From Bugula neritina (Eukaryota > Animalia > Bryozoa): a DNA stretch of 64,000 bases. Shown here in pieces: positions 20,651 to 31,189 of this stretch. The notes beneath the pieces were generated by a model, which ran no database searches, was not told where the DNA came from, and saw nothing but the letters and a program-made list of their open reading frames with translations. Each line of letters begins with the position of its first letter. The stretch's first letter is position 1. The stretch spans positions 6,663,751 through 6,727,750 of the forward strand of contig OZ037773.1 in assembly GCA_964035545.1 (NCBI GenBank). The letters run 5' to 3'. A program made the position numbers and the translations under genes.

Positions 20651-23600
20651 CTACATGACCTTGCACTTGCTGGGTTTCTCTGTTGGTCTAGCAATGCGCC
20701 TTACTGCTACTTTAGGCTCAGACCACTTTTCCTCCTCTGCCAACGGGTGCATGTTTTGAAAAGCTTTGGTAGCCATTTTTTTCTTTGCACGTTCCAAAGA
20801 ATCTGCCTGGCCAGCAAATTCTTTCTCCGTTTTTTCAAACTTGGAAATAAGTTCCTTGACGGAGTTTTTGTCATCGTCATCACCCCCCTCTGATTCATTC
20901 AGTGATTTTTGAATTTCTGAATTAAGAGCTTGTCGTTTTGAAATAGTATTCTTTTTCTTTTGCTCTTCTTCTTCCGTTTGAAGCACCGTCCATCTTGTTT
21001 CTAACTGCTTTGCCTTTTTCATTTTTCTCATAACCACTTTTCTCTGTTTTTCACATTCTTCATAGAGCCTTACCATTTCAAGTGCTTTGAGGATGTACAT
21101 AACTTTATCTTGTATAAACATTGGAGACTTTCGGCCTTCTAAAATTTCTCTGTATTTTCTAAAAGCAAAGCATAGAATTATGAAAATTATCTAAAATAAG
21201 TTTCAAAAATAAAATGCAGCACTCAGCTTATATACCTACACTCTATGCCGAGGAGTACAGCTTTTTAAAACTCAATGGCTAAAAAATATAAATAGGCAGT
21301 AAAAGCTTAGAGCTGGCAAGGATTTACAACTTTAAGTATAAAACAAAGTATACTACCATAAATGCAGATTTATATATATGTGCCTTAAATTATGTATGTT
21401 AAAATGCTTATACACATTTTCAAGTTTATCAAAATTGTTAACTAGAAAACCAGTTATGAAAAATGATAAAAATGAGTAAATTAGCTGTTAGATCAAATGT
21501 ATTTTGTGACAACAACTAGTGGATAATGACCCACACTACATTGCTAGACAACTTTTGAATTTTGATCACATACAACATTGCTAAAATACTACTTTCCAAC
21601 TGATTAATATAAGATATTATAAATTTTAAGATTTCCATGATTACATAATTTCTCACTTCTTCAAGTCATGATCCGAGTGAGTTTTATATGACTCATTCTT
21701 TTCGAACAGCTCAATAGCTTCATCTACTATTTGATGCAAGTATGCTTCAATTTCTTCAGTGCTTCCAAAAGTCATGCCATATGCCTAAAAACCAGCTAAA
21801 TCTTACTAAGAGTTGCCCCAATAAATTACAATGTTTACATGTAATAAATATAATTACATTTTTATCAACAAATTAATATGGTTTTGAGTAATTTTGTATA
21901 GCTTAACTTTTCAATACAATCCTCAAATTATTAAAACTACCTATTTTAAAACATAATTTAGTTAAAAAAGGGAACTATTTTGGCAAACGGAAAGCCTCGA
22001 ACAGATGATGTCTAAAATTGATGTTTTGGTAATTTAATGGTTCCTAATATCTTACTAATTTATTTACCTTTTCAAACAAAGAGTCATATAGTTGTCCAGC
22101 TTCTATGAATGCCTTGTTCAACATTGAATCATTCAGTGCTTGCTGTGGAGTGCGAATTGACTTGATCCTTTTCTCCATACCCTAAAAACCAGACACAGAG
22201 CACCTGTAGACACAGAGCACCTGTAGACACAGAGCACCTGTAGACACAGAGCACCTGTAGACACAGAGCACCTGTAGACACAGAGCACCTGTAGACACAG
22301 AGCACCTGTAGACACAGAGCACCTGTAGACACAGAGCACCTGTAGACACAGAGCACCTGTAGACACAGAGCACCTGTAGACACAGAGCACCTATAGACAC
22401 AGAGCACCTGTAGACACACAGAGCACCTGTAGACACACAGAGCACCTGTAGACACACAGAGCACCTGTAGACACACAGCACCTGTAGACACACAGCACCT
22501 GTAGACACACAACACCTGTAGACACAGAGCACCTGTACACACAGAACACCTGTGCACACAGAGCACCTGTAGACACACAGAGCACCTGTAGACACAGAGC
22601 ACCTGTAGACACACAACACCTGTAGAAATACAGCACATGTAGAAGTACCAGTAAGATGCATACGACTCCGAGTTTGGTGACTCGTGGTTTGTACTATACG
22701 TACTGGAAAATGGCATGCACATTGTATCTCTCCAATATTACAATCTGTGGACTATAGTAAAAGTAAAAATAAACTTTGACAATCTGAGAAGACTTTTACC
22801 AACAGCTTACCTTAAAGCGTTGTAAGATCTCTCGACCTTTGCGGAGAGAGCTTTCAGAGGGAAGACACAGAAAAACTACGTGGAAAAGTTGTTTGGCTGC
22901 TTGGAGAAATTCTTCATCACAATCTAAATCATAAACAAGTCATTTGTACGTGCCAAATAACATTCAAACAGTTATTTATAATTAAATATTTAAACTTGCA
23001 ACCAGTCTGCAATGCTTTGTTCCGGTTAGAATGTTAAAATAACTTGAGTTTTGTAAAAGTTTATTCACAATATAGTTCTGCAGAAATTGTTGAGTAAAAA
23101 CATCAGGTTTAAAGGATTAGATCTGTGTTACATCAGCAAACCTCAGGTTAAAACTTTTTTTGAAAAGCAACTTTATGCATGCTTAGAGCTAGCTTACCTT
23201 TAATGGTGACTCTTTTGTCTTTCTCAGAGTTTCTGCGAACGGTTCTGCCTGGTTCTGGCATAGTGTATGTGGAGATAAAGCTGAAAGATCTTCTTATGCC
23301 AAGGTGATTCTGTCGAGTCTCCTCAACCTTGGAGTTCTCCTGTATTTAAATTTAGCAATACAAAACTCACTTCTGTGAACCGGTACTGGAACCCTAGGCT
23401 AGGACAGTGCTCTAATCACTAGGTCATGACTGCTTTACAAAAAGCAGTAGCTCTGCTTACATTTAGTATACAGAAAAAGCATAACTGGAATTATATTGAA
23501 TGATCTTTTTTTTTAGACCTTTAATGCTGCAAGCTTTGCAAAATTAACAACTTATTCCAAATTTACAAGCAGTTCCTGAGCTGGCAAATGTCAAAGTCCA

Positions 23601-29600: not shown

Positions 29601-31189
29601 TGTGTGTGTGTGTGTGTGTGTGTGTGTGTGTGTGTGTGTGTGTGTGTGTGTGTGTGTGTGTGTGTGTGTGTGTGTGTGTGTGTGTGTGTGTGTGTGTGTG
29701 TGTGTGTGTGTGTGTGTGTGTGTGTGTGTGTGTGTGTGTGTGTGTGTCTATATTATAGAAAGTTTTAAACAAACCTCCAGCTGTAATGTCCTCTGGGAAA
29801 GAGACCACCTGAACAGGCTTAGCATTTGGGTTTATCCAGTTTATAAAGGCAGCTTTCTACACAAAACAGAAAATATTAAAACAAAATGAAATGACTCTAG
29901 TAGCCAGATATCTTATTTATCATATTTTAATTCTCAAAATTAAATGAACATACACAGTTATGTTTGTTTGCATAATTTACTGATTTTGTGTTTATCAAGG
30001 AAACATTTAAAAAACAGTTTTAAATCTAAAAAAAAATTTAATCAAATAAATTCAACTGAGTTTTCAACACACAACTTGAAGTATAATATGATTGAGCATA
30101 TTTAACAGTGTCTGAATGGAAGCAATTTTTGTAAAAAGCGTTTAACCCAAGGTAATGCAAAGTGCGAAAGTTTAAGAAAACTCACAAGCTAGATTAAACC
30201 AGCTTATATGGCTACATGTTGACAGTAAACAAACTTATATTTAATCAAATAATTGACTCCGGATAGAAAATGCCTTGCTTATATATAAAACCTAAAAGAT
30301 AGCCACACGCAAATCATAGTAGCAAATGCTAAAAATAGCAGAGGAGAAAGTAGTAGATTAAATTCCTCATAAAAAGCCTAGAAAGATTTGTTCTATGGAA
30401 AGCGTTTGGTAAAACTTATGAGAATTAGGAAAAAACTTCAAGTTATTAAAACTTTTGTAGCTGATTCACAAACTCTGAAGGGATTTTACACAAAAAATTT
30501 AAAAAGTTTTTCACTCAGTGAACTATAGAGCAGGTGTATATATGTTGCAAGAACTACACACCTATCTCTTGTCTTACAGGGACGGTGATCATGTAGCCTT
30601 TGATCTTGAGCAGCTTAATTTACTCTATACTAAGCTTAGTGTGAAGCTCATAAGCTTTCTTTTTTTAATAATTTATTTCTTATCTTGTATAGATCTGATG
30701 TGTAGAAACAGTACGACTGTGGAATGTCAGATTCTTTCAAGTAATATATTATTATGATTATGAGATATAACATCTGCAAACTTGTGAGGCTGAGGCCATC
30801 ATAATATTATAATGGTATAAGGCTATAAGTAGATTGCAGTCTTTAATATCATGTATTACTATATTTAATATTATGTTCAATATTATTTAAATATCACTGC
30901 CTTGCCATTAGCTACTGGGCACTGCTAGTAAGATGAGTTTGTGGTTGCCGTTTGCATGAACTCATGGCTGTGGTTTCATACAATGTAACTGTTACTAAAC
31001 ATTGAATGAAAAATCCATTCAAACACAGTGATATATATGTTAGTAAAGAAAAGGCCTGCAGAAGATTTTATGGATTCACTATTCACTATTGTATAATATG
31101 ATTTGAATATACTTAGAAGAAGAAGACATGTGAAGCTAACTTACAACTTCACTTTTGATTGCTGAGACTTTGCTGGCTGCTGAAGACAT
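20651..31189 (-). CDS. Atlastin-like GB1/RHD3-family (dynamin superfamily) GTPase with a charged helical tail and C-terminal CaaX, ~586 aa
   Basis: Exons 31189-31145, 29856-29775 (KPVQVV), 27390-27233 (G1 ITGKLRSGKSFLLN), 26729-26604 (G2 VTHGIWVW), 24907-24749 (G3 LLVDCQG...DLELLQ), 24532-~24395 (G4 LIFLIRDF; donor uncertain), 23339-23198 (IRRSFSFISTYTMPEPG), 22923-22811 (DEEFLQAAKQL), 22751-22704, 22181-22068, 21784-21657 and 21158-20651 (ends KPSKCKVM*). All phases are compatible. Motifs parallel atlastin GAFRKGKS, TTGIQIW, DTQG, LIFLVRDW and CFLLPHPG. The frame is also open upstream of the ATG, so the N-terminus may be longer. Confidence 0.85.
22191..22630. repeat. 17-bp minisatellite (AGACACAGAGCACCTGT), ~25 copies, filling most of a GTPase intron
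   Basis: Tandem array degrading rightwards, some units with extra CA; source of the four Cys-rich repeat ORFs at 22129-22722. Confidence 0.95.
23697..24383. mobile_element. Non-autonomous MITE, PIF/Harbinger (Tourist)-like, 687 bp
   Basis: ~42-bp TIRs: left CCCCTCATTCACACTTACCGTATCGTACGCCGTAACAGCAAA, right (reverse complement) CCCCCTATTCACACTTACCGTACCGTACGCCGTAACAGCAAA. 3-bp TAA duplication at 23694-23696 and 24384-24386. AT-rich non-coding interior. Confidence 0.9.
24995..26512. repeat. Giant pure (AC)n microsatellite, ~759 units
   Basis: Uninterrupted 1518 bp in the intron between the G2 and G3 exons. Confidence 0.98.
28576..29747. repeat. Giant pure (GT)n microsatellite, ~586 units
   Basis: Uninterrupted 1172 bp in the intron before the P-loop exon; reverse-complementary to the 24995-26512 tract. 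Confidence 0.98.

Follow-up and report, generated by a model that had tools for sequence, protein, structure and literature searches.

A predicted large GTPase of the atlastin/RNF112 branch that ends in a CaaX box in the bryozoan Bugula neritina

Atlastins and guanylate-binding proteins (GBPs) are sister groups of large GTPases. Atlastins fuse membranes of the endoplasmic reticulum (ER) by means of a fixed hairpin anchor, and GBPs attack the membranes of pathogens by means of a switchable prenyl anchor. Here we describe a gene on the minus strand of a 64,000-nucleotide stretch of the genome of the bryozoan Bugula neritina (assembly GCA_964035545.1, contig OZ037773.1, positions 6,663,751 to 6,727,750; hereafter the window, to which coordinates without a contig name refer). 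A reading of this stretch from its letters alone (the sequence-only reading) had proposed an atlastin-type GTPase domain on a GBP-like body, with no transmembrane hairpin, a charged helical tail and a CaaX box at the end. Our analysis favours a gene that is intact and under selective constraint and codes for a soluble large GTPase of the atlastin/RNF112 branch. It would have originated by duplication, and in it a charged helix and a CaaX box (Cys-Lys-Val-Met, CKVM) would have replaced the membrane segment. We put the probability of this explanation at roughly 0.6. The narrower part of it, an intact and constrained gene whose predicted product belongs to that branch, lacks a transmembrane segment and ends in a conserved CaaX box followed by a stop, is established by the comparisons that follow.

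The closest described systems include proteins of an insect and of vertebrates. In the silkworm Bombyx mori, the atlastin homologues BmAtlastin-n, Atlastin3 and Atlastin4 have no transmembrane segment and exist beside canonical atlastins, and the authors of that study found no GBPs in the silkworm genome (PMC4926086). The cytoplasmic BmAtlastin-n restricts two pathogens, a baculovirus and a microsporidian (PMC4926086; reviewed in PMC9005921). The review raises the question of whether atlastins assumed defence functions in those invertebrates that have no GBPs (PMC9005921). The other relevant relative is RNF112 (also ZNF179 or BFP), an atlastin-like GTPase whose Xenopus protein has been solved (9JJU); it has an N-terminal RING and, at the C-terminus, a hydrophobic helix and an amphipathic helix (PMC12012479).

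The window consists of eukaryotic DNA that is rich in A and T, and its exons are short. The gene runs through 11 exons from an ATG at 31189 to a TAG at 20651-20653 (Table 1), every one of its introns has GT-AG borders, and the phases are consistent. Joined, the exons make 1713 nt of coding sequence, that is 570 amino acids, with a sole stop at the end. The sequence-only reading had quoted motifs and limits for this gene; all of the motifs were recovered on the minus strand, and the exon model built here has the same limits, 31189 and 20651. The least certain part is exon 1, for which the basis is limited to the ATG, a consensus donor GTAAGT and phase 0 into exon 2. The locus is a real gene and not a chance arrangement, because its 11 open exons have matching phases, it is under purifying selection relative to a sister taxon, and paralogues have the same exon structure. 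Analyses of hydropathy and composition and local tblastn searches used the joined 570-residue protein; comparisons with Pfam and with solved structures, homology searches and fold predictions were made exon by exon.

The sister taxon is represented by a 2.4-kb Logan contig (L014) that is genomic, introns included, and 84% identical to the window overall. It carries a 173-residue open frame (P0001) ending in ...RPTEKPSKCIVM, that is CIVM-stop. Over exons 9-11 about 750 coding nucleotides align without gaps, and the ratio of non-synonymous to synonymous substitution rates (dN/dS) is 0.47 (Fisher p 0.0095). Exon 9 is 99% identical and has zero non-synonymous changes (dN/dS 0), exon 10 is 95% identical (dN/dS 0.28), and the introns are 90-92% identical with many gaps. 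In the last 45 codons 4.3% of positions are substituted, against 8.8% in introns (p 0.036). Could the locus nevertheless be a decaying or silent duplicate with a functionless open frame and CaaX-like end? One might suspect this from the lack of expression evidence, from the two kilobase-long microsatellites in introns 2 and 4, from a branch that is long in comparison with those of the closest paralogues, A and B (0.81 versus 0.26-0.31), and from a middle part of the tail that evolves faster than introns. Such a duplicate is nevertheless very unlikely, given 11 open exons, intact splice sites, all GTPase motifs kept, zero indels in coding sequence whose adjacent introns have many, and the dN/dS values both overall and in exons 9 and 10.

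The GTPase motifs of the spliced model are G1 GKLRSGKS with the P-loop Arg, switch I VTHGIWVW with its Thr, G3 DCQG and G4 LIRD, and 42 residues stand N-terminal of the G domain. None of the exons of the G domain codes for more than 53 residues. No transmembrane segment is found in the protein: the 19-residue Kyte-Doolittle mean peaks at 1.43 within the G domain and at 0.79 past residue 380. A tblastn search with the transmembrane exons of the genome's own atlastin gave no match in the window either. The last exon codes for 168 residues (K 17%, E 14%, net charge +10). AlphaFold2, given exon 11 alone, predicts two long helices (exon residues 12-88 and 95-136, pLDDT about 60-94), followed by 32 disordered residues with pLDDT about 45 (HPLAEEEKWSEPKVAVRRIARPTEKPSKCKVM). 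The missing hairpin and the charged helical tail of the sequence-only reading are both borne out by these scans. The protein ends with a Cys in fourth position from the C-terminus (Cys567), an aliphatic Val at a2, Met at X and the stop.

How the tail relates to atlastin can be judged from the canonical atlastin gene of the same genome. This gene lies on the same chromosome and strand at a distance of about 123 kb (C9:6551000-6564999, minus strand; L024, L025) and is the best PF02263 locus of the genome. It has the motifs HPVQIV, GAFRKGKS, TTGILMW, DTQG, LVRDW and LMPHPG, then the middle domain, and in its C-terminal part two hydrophobic segments, ITLFSCFVICYLMSG and LLISLVLLATWGY, followed by an amphipathic tail. 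Eight consecutive introns of our gene, from that between exons 3 and 4 to that between exons 10 and 11, agree with those of the canonical atlastin in position and phase (0,0,0,0,1,0,0,2). Exon 11 and its atlastin equivalent both cover the last helix of the middle domain; what follows within the exon is the first membrane segment in atlastin and the charged helix in the CaaX gene. Exons 8-11 are collinear with the atlastin middle-domain exons (the sequence match is not significant), and the start of exon 11 is predicted to be helical. With this collinearity and no GBP_C domain, the GBP-like body of the sequence-only reading has to be given up; its claim of an atlastin-type large GTPase is upheld by the intron positions and phases and by the family comparisons below. 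Its broader notion of a GBP design survives by analogy for the layout of the C-terminus (long helices, basic patch, CaaX), but not for the rest of the protein.

Matched singly against Pfam, exons 3 and 5 give weak hits to PF02263, and no exon gives a match to GBP_C (PF02841). Among solved structures the P-loop exon finds atlastin-3 first, then other atlastins and Xenopus RNF112 (9jju), and no GBP; the G3 exon finds atlastins only, with weak matches. The switch-I exon alone finds RNF112 first, with 23 bits versus 13 for atlastin. We also built exon profiles from 13-14 paralogous loci of the same genome and scored them against solved structures. For the P-loop exon ATL3 scores 42.5 bits, RNF112 33.9 and GBP5 27.9; for the switch-I exon RNF112 scores 45, ATL1 17.9 and GBP5 13.3; for the G3 exon ATL1 scores 33.5, RNF112 19.7 and GBP about 16. 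GBP1, GBP2 and GBP5 stay below the top-scoring atlastin and RNF112 in all three profiles. Because of these bit scores the family is placed, as far as exon profiles can tell, in the atlastin/RNF112 branch and not among GBPs. The atlastin flavour that had been seen in the G domain is thus confirmed for the P-loop and G3 exons but not for the switch-I exon, which is nearest to RNF112.

It follows from the same data how little room there is for placing the gene in the GBP (p65 guanylate-binding protein) family as an ordinary member. Some details do recall it: the weak matches of exons 3 and 5 are to a 'GBP N-terminal domain', and GLGD after G3, GIWVW in switch I and the CaaX end resemble GBP1. Yet PF02263 covers atlastins too, PF02841 is matched by no exon, the GBPs are outranked in every profile, and the gene structure is that of atlastin, so that we consider this identity extremely improbable. 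In the whole genome GBP_C was detected on two small contigs only, C208 and C191, both with in-frame TAA/TAG stops. The first holds a true GBP (C208:24200-26930, L043; PF02263 189 bits, PF02841 56 bits) whose 910-residue open frame exists in the ciliate code only, in DNA of 26.5% GC; the second has weaker GBP and GBP_C matches (C191:8981-10018), again with in-frame stops. Both contigs are probably ciliate contaminants.

A more serious question is whether the family descends from atlastin proper or represents, in invertebrates and without the RING, the GTPase lineage of RNF112, in which case its resemblance to atlastin would reflect shared ancestry of the branch. The switch-I exon is far nearer to Xenopus RNF112, both alone and as a profile (45 versus 18 bits), the three profiles summed give about 99 bits for RNF112 and about 86-90 for atlastins, and the fold of RNF112 resembles that of atlastin (PMC12012479). 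In a tree of concatenated exons 3-7 from 15 loci, moreover, the canonical atlastin stands outside a group of 14 non-canonical genes (support 80/79). On the other side, the P-loop and G3 exons are nearer to atlastins, the C-terminal hydrophobic region of RNF112 is absent, and no C3HC4-like RING pattern occurs in the open frames of the 12 kb upstream, although an unrecognised exon farther upstream is possible. The comparison of gene structures was made with the genome's own atlastin only. The tree, with the ciliate-code GBP of C208 as its sole and distant outgroup, is not rooted by it and includes no RNF112, so that it speaks to the grouping of genes within this genome and cannot decide between atlastin and GBP affinity or place RNF112. 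An RNF112 origin of the family is possible, if less likely than not. Within the group the gene joins paralogues on chromosome 8, with 50% identity to paralogue A and the long branch mentioned above, and the inner nodes are unresolved; a phylogeny, which the sequence-only reading had called for, thus supplies the neighbours of the gene and not its deeper affinity.

The genome (216 Mb in 321 contigs) holds about 18 atlastin-like loci with related P-loop and G3 exons, and the C-termini of these genes vary: there are CaaX boxes, a hydrophobic Gly/Ala-rich tail, or neither (Table 1). A Cys equivalent to Cys567 marks the clade, and CaaX boxes are present at the ends of open frames within the family. 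The CaaX context of the studied gene is common only to its orthologue in the sister taxon. The distant paralogue C5f has three tandem terminal open frames (8465-8764, 10498-10926 and 12405-12920 of the reverse complement of its locus), all starting RKY(E/K)D..., which would be either alternative last exons with different anchors or partial tandem duplicates. In paralogue C5d the Gly/Ala-rich end looks like a hairpin anchor, unlike that of atlastin. Beside paralogue C5a, a 556-residue open frame with a gag-like zinc knuckle and an aspartic-protease-like motif (C5:14224000-14225668, minus strand; L033), which continues past the end of the sequence examined, looks like a retrotransposon; long open frames at paralogue loci proved to be repeats.

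Several observations weigh against our explanation. Exons 6-11, taken singly, have no significant match to any Pfam family, and exons 6 and 7, also singly, match no solved structure. Outside the sister-taxon P0001 the tail exon has no relatives in 1.84 billion representative proteins (the exhaustive search also brought up P0002, which was rejected as a low-complexity protein without a GBP domain), and the window's own genome has no second copy of it. The middle of the tail (20792-21020) has 16% substitutions versus 8.8% in introns (p 2e-4), with no indel; this could reflect evolution that is fast or diversifying, or else mutation that is locally biased. The search of sequencing runs found no RNA run covering the locus, and the contigs of two runs over 16300-22185 are DNA-like, with no splice joints at exon borders. 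Transcription, the exon junctions and the use of the TAG are unproven for these two reasons (one sister-taxon contig stops at most 3 nt from the acceptor of exon 11, which is ambiguous). Nothing at the locus directly supports an immune function. Paralogue C has 22-28 further residues after its equivalent Cys, meaning that the Cys is conserved and is not always in a CaaX box. Finally, the closest paralogues A and B carry donor-like GTTAGT and GTAAGT one codon past the equivalent Cys, where the studied gene has GTCATG, and an intron at this place may be ancestral.

The last point leads to the possibility that CKVM is not the true C-terminus. If an intron started one codon after the Cys (AAG/GTCATG, between 20659 and 20660), the mRNA would run on into a downstream exon, and the CaaX box would be an artefact of reading through the genome. 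Paralogues A and B, with no in-frame stop adjoining, could be read in this way; the gene already uses one weak donor, gtttgt of exon 2; and conservation extends past the stop, over 28 identical nucleotides and again in a 90-bp block at 19905-19994. In the sister taxon, however, the Cys, the a2 Val, the X Met and the stop are identical to those of the window and a1 alone differs (AAG for Lys versus ATC for Ile), so that precisely the three exon bases before the would-be donor are unconserved. This pattern fits the expectation for a CaaX box and not that for a splice donor. GTCATG would also make a poor donor because of its C at +3 and its T at +5, and the CaaX-stop endings of C5f lack any donor-like sequence. 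Candidate acceptors in the downstream block are unconserved (TAG/ATG versus TGG/ATG) and would give unrelated ends, and no similarity to the post-Cys tails of paralogue C or to atlastin's transmembrane exons was found downstream. We rate an intron after the Cys as unlikely because the donor is poor, because the bases before it are unconserved in contrast to the CaaX box, and because no plausible downstream exon was found. The ending Cys-a-a-X-stop that had been read from the letters is present in both taxa. As for its conservation, which was to be checked, it extends to this one orthologue and is echoed by the CaaX ends of C5f, but paralogues A, B and C keep the Cys without a CaaX-stop.

A few features downstream of the TAG can be recorded here. 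An ATTAAA, near which a poly(A) tail might begin, stands at 20460. Some 700 bp past the stop, the block at 19905-19994 matches the sister-taxon contig with 96% identity, against about 84% and many gaps in the sequence on either side; neither a conserved splice acceptor nor an open frame lies in it. The segments 16300-16700 and 19255-19845, which have many variant joints and a contig depth between thousands and hundreds of thousands in two runs, are high-copy repeats or transposon fragments. On the other side of the gene, paralogues A and B and the canonical atlastin have the counterparts of exon 2 and of the P-loop exon joined as one unbroken exon. Intron 2 (27391-29774), largely (GT)586 of 1.17 kb, is missing from these genes and is an apparent intron gain linked to the microsatellite. 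Its array and that of intron 4 (24908-26603) form an inverted pair that brackets the P-loop and switch-I exons.

Table 1. Positions of the exons, motifs and repeats of the CaaX gene in the window, and C-terminal ends of its paralogues
Feature	Position	Strand	Details
Exon 1 (tentative, 15 aa)	31145..31189	-	MSSAASKVSAIKSEV; ATG start; donor gtaagt; phase 0 into exon 2
Exon 2	29775..29856	-	KAAFINWINPNAKPVQVVSFPEDITAG(G); matches atlastin N-terminal PVQIV strand; donor gtttgt, phase 1
Exon 3	27233..27390	-	G1/P-loop with P-loop Arg; PF02263 E 6.7e-4; atlastin-3 E 1.4e-4
Exon 4	26604..26729	-	Switch I/G2, VTHGIWVW; top solved match Xenopus RNF112 (9jju, E 7e-4)
Exon 5	24749..24907	-	G3 (DCQG) and next helix, ends DLELLQ; PF02263 E 1.6e-4
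Exon 6	24395..24532	-	TCTWYG...LIFLIRD (G4, RD)...DEEFNKI; borders as in atlastin exon LFTEYGK...LVRDW
Exon 7	23198..23339	-	End of G domain, FISTYTMPEPG (atlastin CYLMPHPG); phase-1 donor as in atlastin
Exon 8	22811..22923	-	DCDEEFLQAAKQLF...; linker and start of middle domain; phase-1 acceptor, phase-0 donor after ...FK, as in atlastin
Exon 9	22068..22181	-	Middle-domain helix
Exon 10	21657..21784	-	Middle-domain helix; phase-2 donor
Exon 11	20651..21158	-	Last middle-domain helix, K/E-rich helical tail, disordered basic stretch, CKVM, TAG
CaaX box Cys-Lys-Val-Met	20654..20665	-	TGC AAG GTC ATG, then TAG stop
Basic stretch before CaaX box	20666..20725	-	WSEPKVAVRRIARPTEKPSK; 6 K/R and 2 D/E over 20 residues
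Motif KPVQVV	29803-29820	-	
Motif GKLRSGKS	27278-27301	-	
Motif DLELLQ	24749-24766	-	
Motif TCTWYG	24515-24532	-	
Motif LIFLIRD	24443-24463	-	
Motif DEEF	24404-24415; 22907-22918	-	Two occurrences
Motif YTMPEPG	23247-23267	-	
(GT)586 microsatellite	28576..29747	.	Fills intron 2
(AC)760 microsatellite	24995..26513	.	Intron 4; orientation opposite to the (GT)n array
17-bp minisatellite, 26 copies	22191..22643	.	Intron 8
Paralogue A (closest)			Equivalent Cys: ...KHKSKCM, then GTTAGT (TGC-ATG/GTTAGT); no adjacent in-frame stop
Paralogue B (closest)			Equivalent Cys: ...KDKSCT, then GTAAGT (TGC-ACT/GTAAGT); no adjacent in-frame stop
Paralogue C, terminal open frame 1			...AAKC, then 28 more residues
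Paralogue C, terminal open frame 2			...SEKC, then 22 more residues
Paralogue C5f (distant)	C5:16729000-16741999 (L041, L042)	-	2 of 3 tandem terminal open frames end in CaaX: STCIIS-stop, KSPKPSCIVS-stop
Paralogue C5d	C5:17511500-17523500 (L037, L038)	-	Ends in 45-residue Gly/Ala-rich hydrophobic stretch with central Pro (GVAIGLAVGAFAAAVGAFVAVPYVLAAGAAVAGVSAVTGLLTFLFGK)
Paralogue D			C-terminus of basic residues

What might such a protein do? The gene would have arisen by duplication from an atlastin-type ancestor and would have retained a catalytically complete G domain (P-loop Arg, switch-I Thr, DxxG and RD) and the helical middle domain. Within the exon that in atlastin codes for the first membrane segment, about 125 residues of charged helix, flexible basic stretch and CaaX box would have taken that segment's place. 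We infer that farnesyltransferase modifies Cys567, because a Met at X favours farnesylation, because a Lys at a1 is tolerated in known substrates (CKVQ of CENP-F and CKVL of RhoB are prenylated), and because prenyltransferase alpha-subunit repeats are found at two loci of the genome. The farnesyl group together with the neighbouring basic residues would give weak and reversible membrane binding. Dimerisation of G domains driven by GTP, as in atlastin, RNF112 and GBP1, may then lead to clustering or tethering on a target membrane. The gene would be part of a lineage-specific expansion of about 18 atlastin-like genes with differing C-termini. A role in cell-autonomous defence, as for the silkworm BmAtlastin-n, is plausible by analogy and in view of the family expansion, and speculative.

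The suggestion can be carried further, to the whole family. A lineage with no canonical GBP on its main chromosome-scale contigs might have built a GBP-like, cell-autonomous system of membrane targeting from GTPases of the atlastin/RNF112 type. The ER hairpin would have been exchanged for interchangeable C-terminal anchors (in this gene a farnesyl group with a basic patch, in C5f alternative terminal exons with CaaX or other ends, in C5d a Gly/Ala-rich tail) in about 17 fast-evolving members, and prenyl-anchored dynamin-like immune GTPases would have emerged independently and convergently. We offer this tentatively, as an idea with the odds clearly against it. At the level of sequence, an atlastin-type motor with a GBP-type anchor is found in a genome whose main chromosome-scale contigs yielded no GBP_C match. 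Should the protein prove to be farnesylated and to respond to infection, this would amount to a second, independent origin of the GBP design and to a natural experiment in which the chemistry of the anchor redirected a dynamin-like GTPase from the maintenance of an organelle to reversible membrane targeting; studies of mechanism would also gain a compact protein of 570 residues. If, on the other hand, the CaaX box goes unused, the locus is one more atlastin paralogue without a transmembrane segment and of modest interest.

It remains to compare the gene with the known systems. A limited literature search, which is not proof of absence, found no report of a CaaX-bearing atlastin-like protein and nothing relevant on prenylated atlastin-like proteins or on lophotrochozoan atlastin expansions. 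With atlastins (ATL1-3, that of Drosophila and the canonical one of this genome) the CaaX gene shares the P-loop Arg, the switch-I Thr, DxxG, (I/V)RD, PVQ(V/I)V and MP(E/H)PG, the collinear middle-domain exons and the eight introns, and among its solved relatives atlastins rank first or second in the searches with the P-loop and G3 exons. Unlike them, it has neither a transmembrane hairpin nor a C-terminal amphipathic helix and carries in their stead the charged helical tail with the CaaX box; its switch I is VTHGIWVW in contrast to TTGI(L/Q)(M/I)W, and an extra intron splits its N-terminal exon. RNF112 is alike in its atlastin-like G domain and middle domain with the P-loop Arg and is the nearest solved sequence for the switch-I exon, whereas its RING and its C-terminal hydrophobic and amphipathic helices were not found in the CaaX gene.

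The type of BmAtlastin-n, compared here by its description only, is similar in that an atlastin-like G domain and a helical middle domain, predicted in the CaaX gene, occur without a transmembrane segment, in a genome that also has a canonical atlastin. It is longer, however (770 versus 570 amino acids), and the paper mentions no CaaX box or lipid anchor (PMC4926086). Vertebrate GBP1, GBP2 and GBP5 share with the CaaX gene the design of a soluble GTPase of the dynamin superfamily with a long helical C-terminal part and basic residues by the CaaX box (PMC9005921), prenylation being predicted in our case, and they too form a multigene family. They belong to another branch of the superfamily, though, and the CaaX gene lacks GBP_C and has the gene structure of atlastin. 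Its likeness to GBPs is, on this sequence evidence, convergent and not inherited. Atlastin homologues without a transmembrane segment are already known in antiviral defence from BmAtlastin-n (PMC4926086), and the new element is the CaaX ending.

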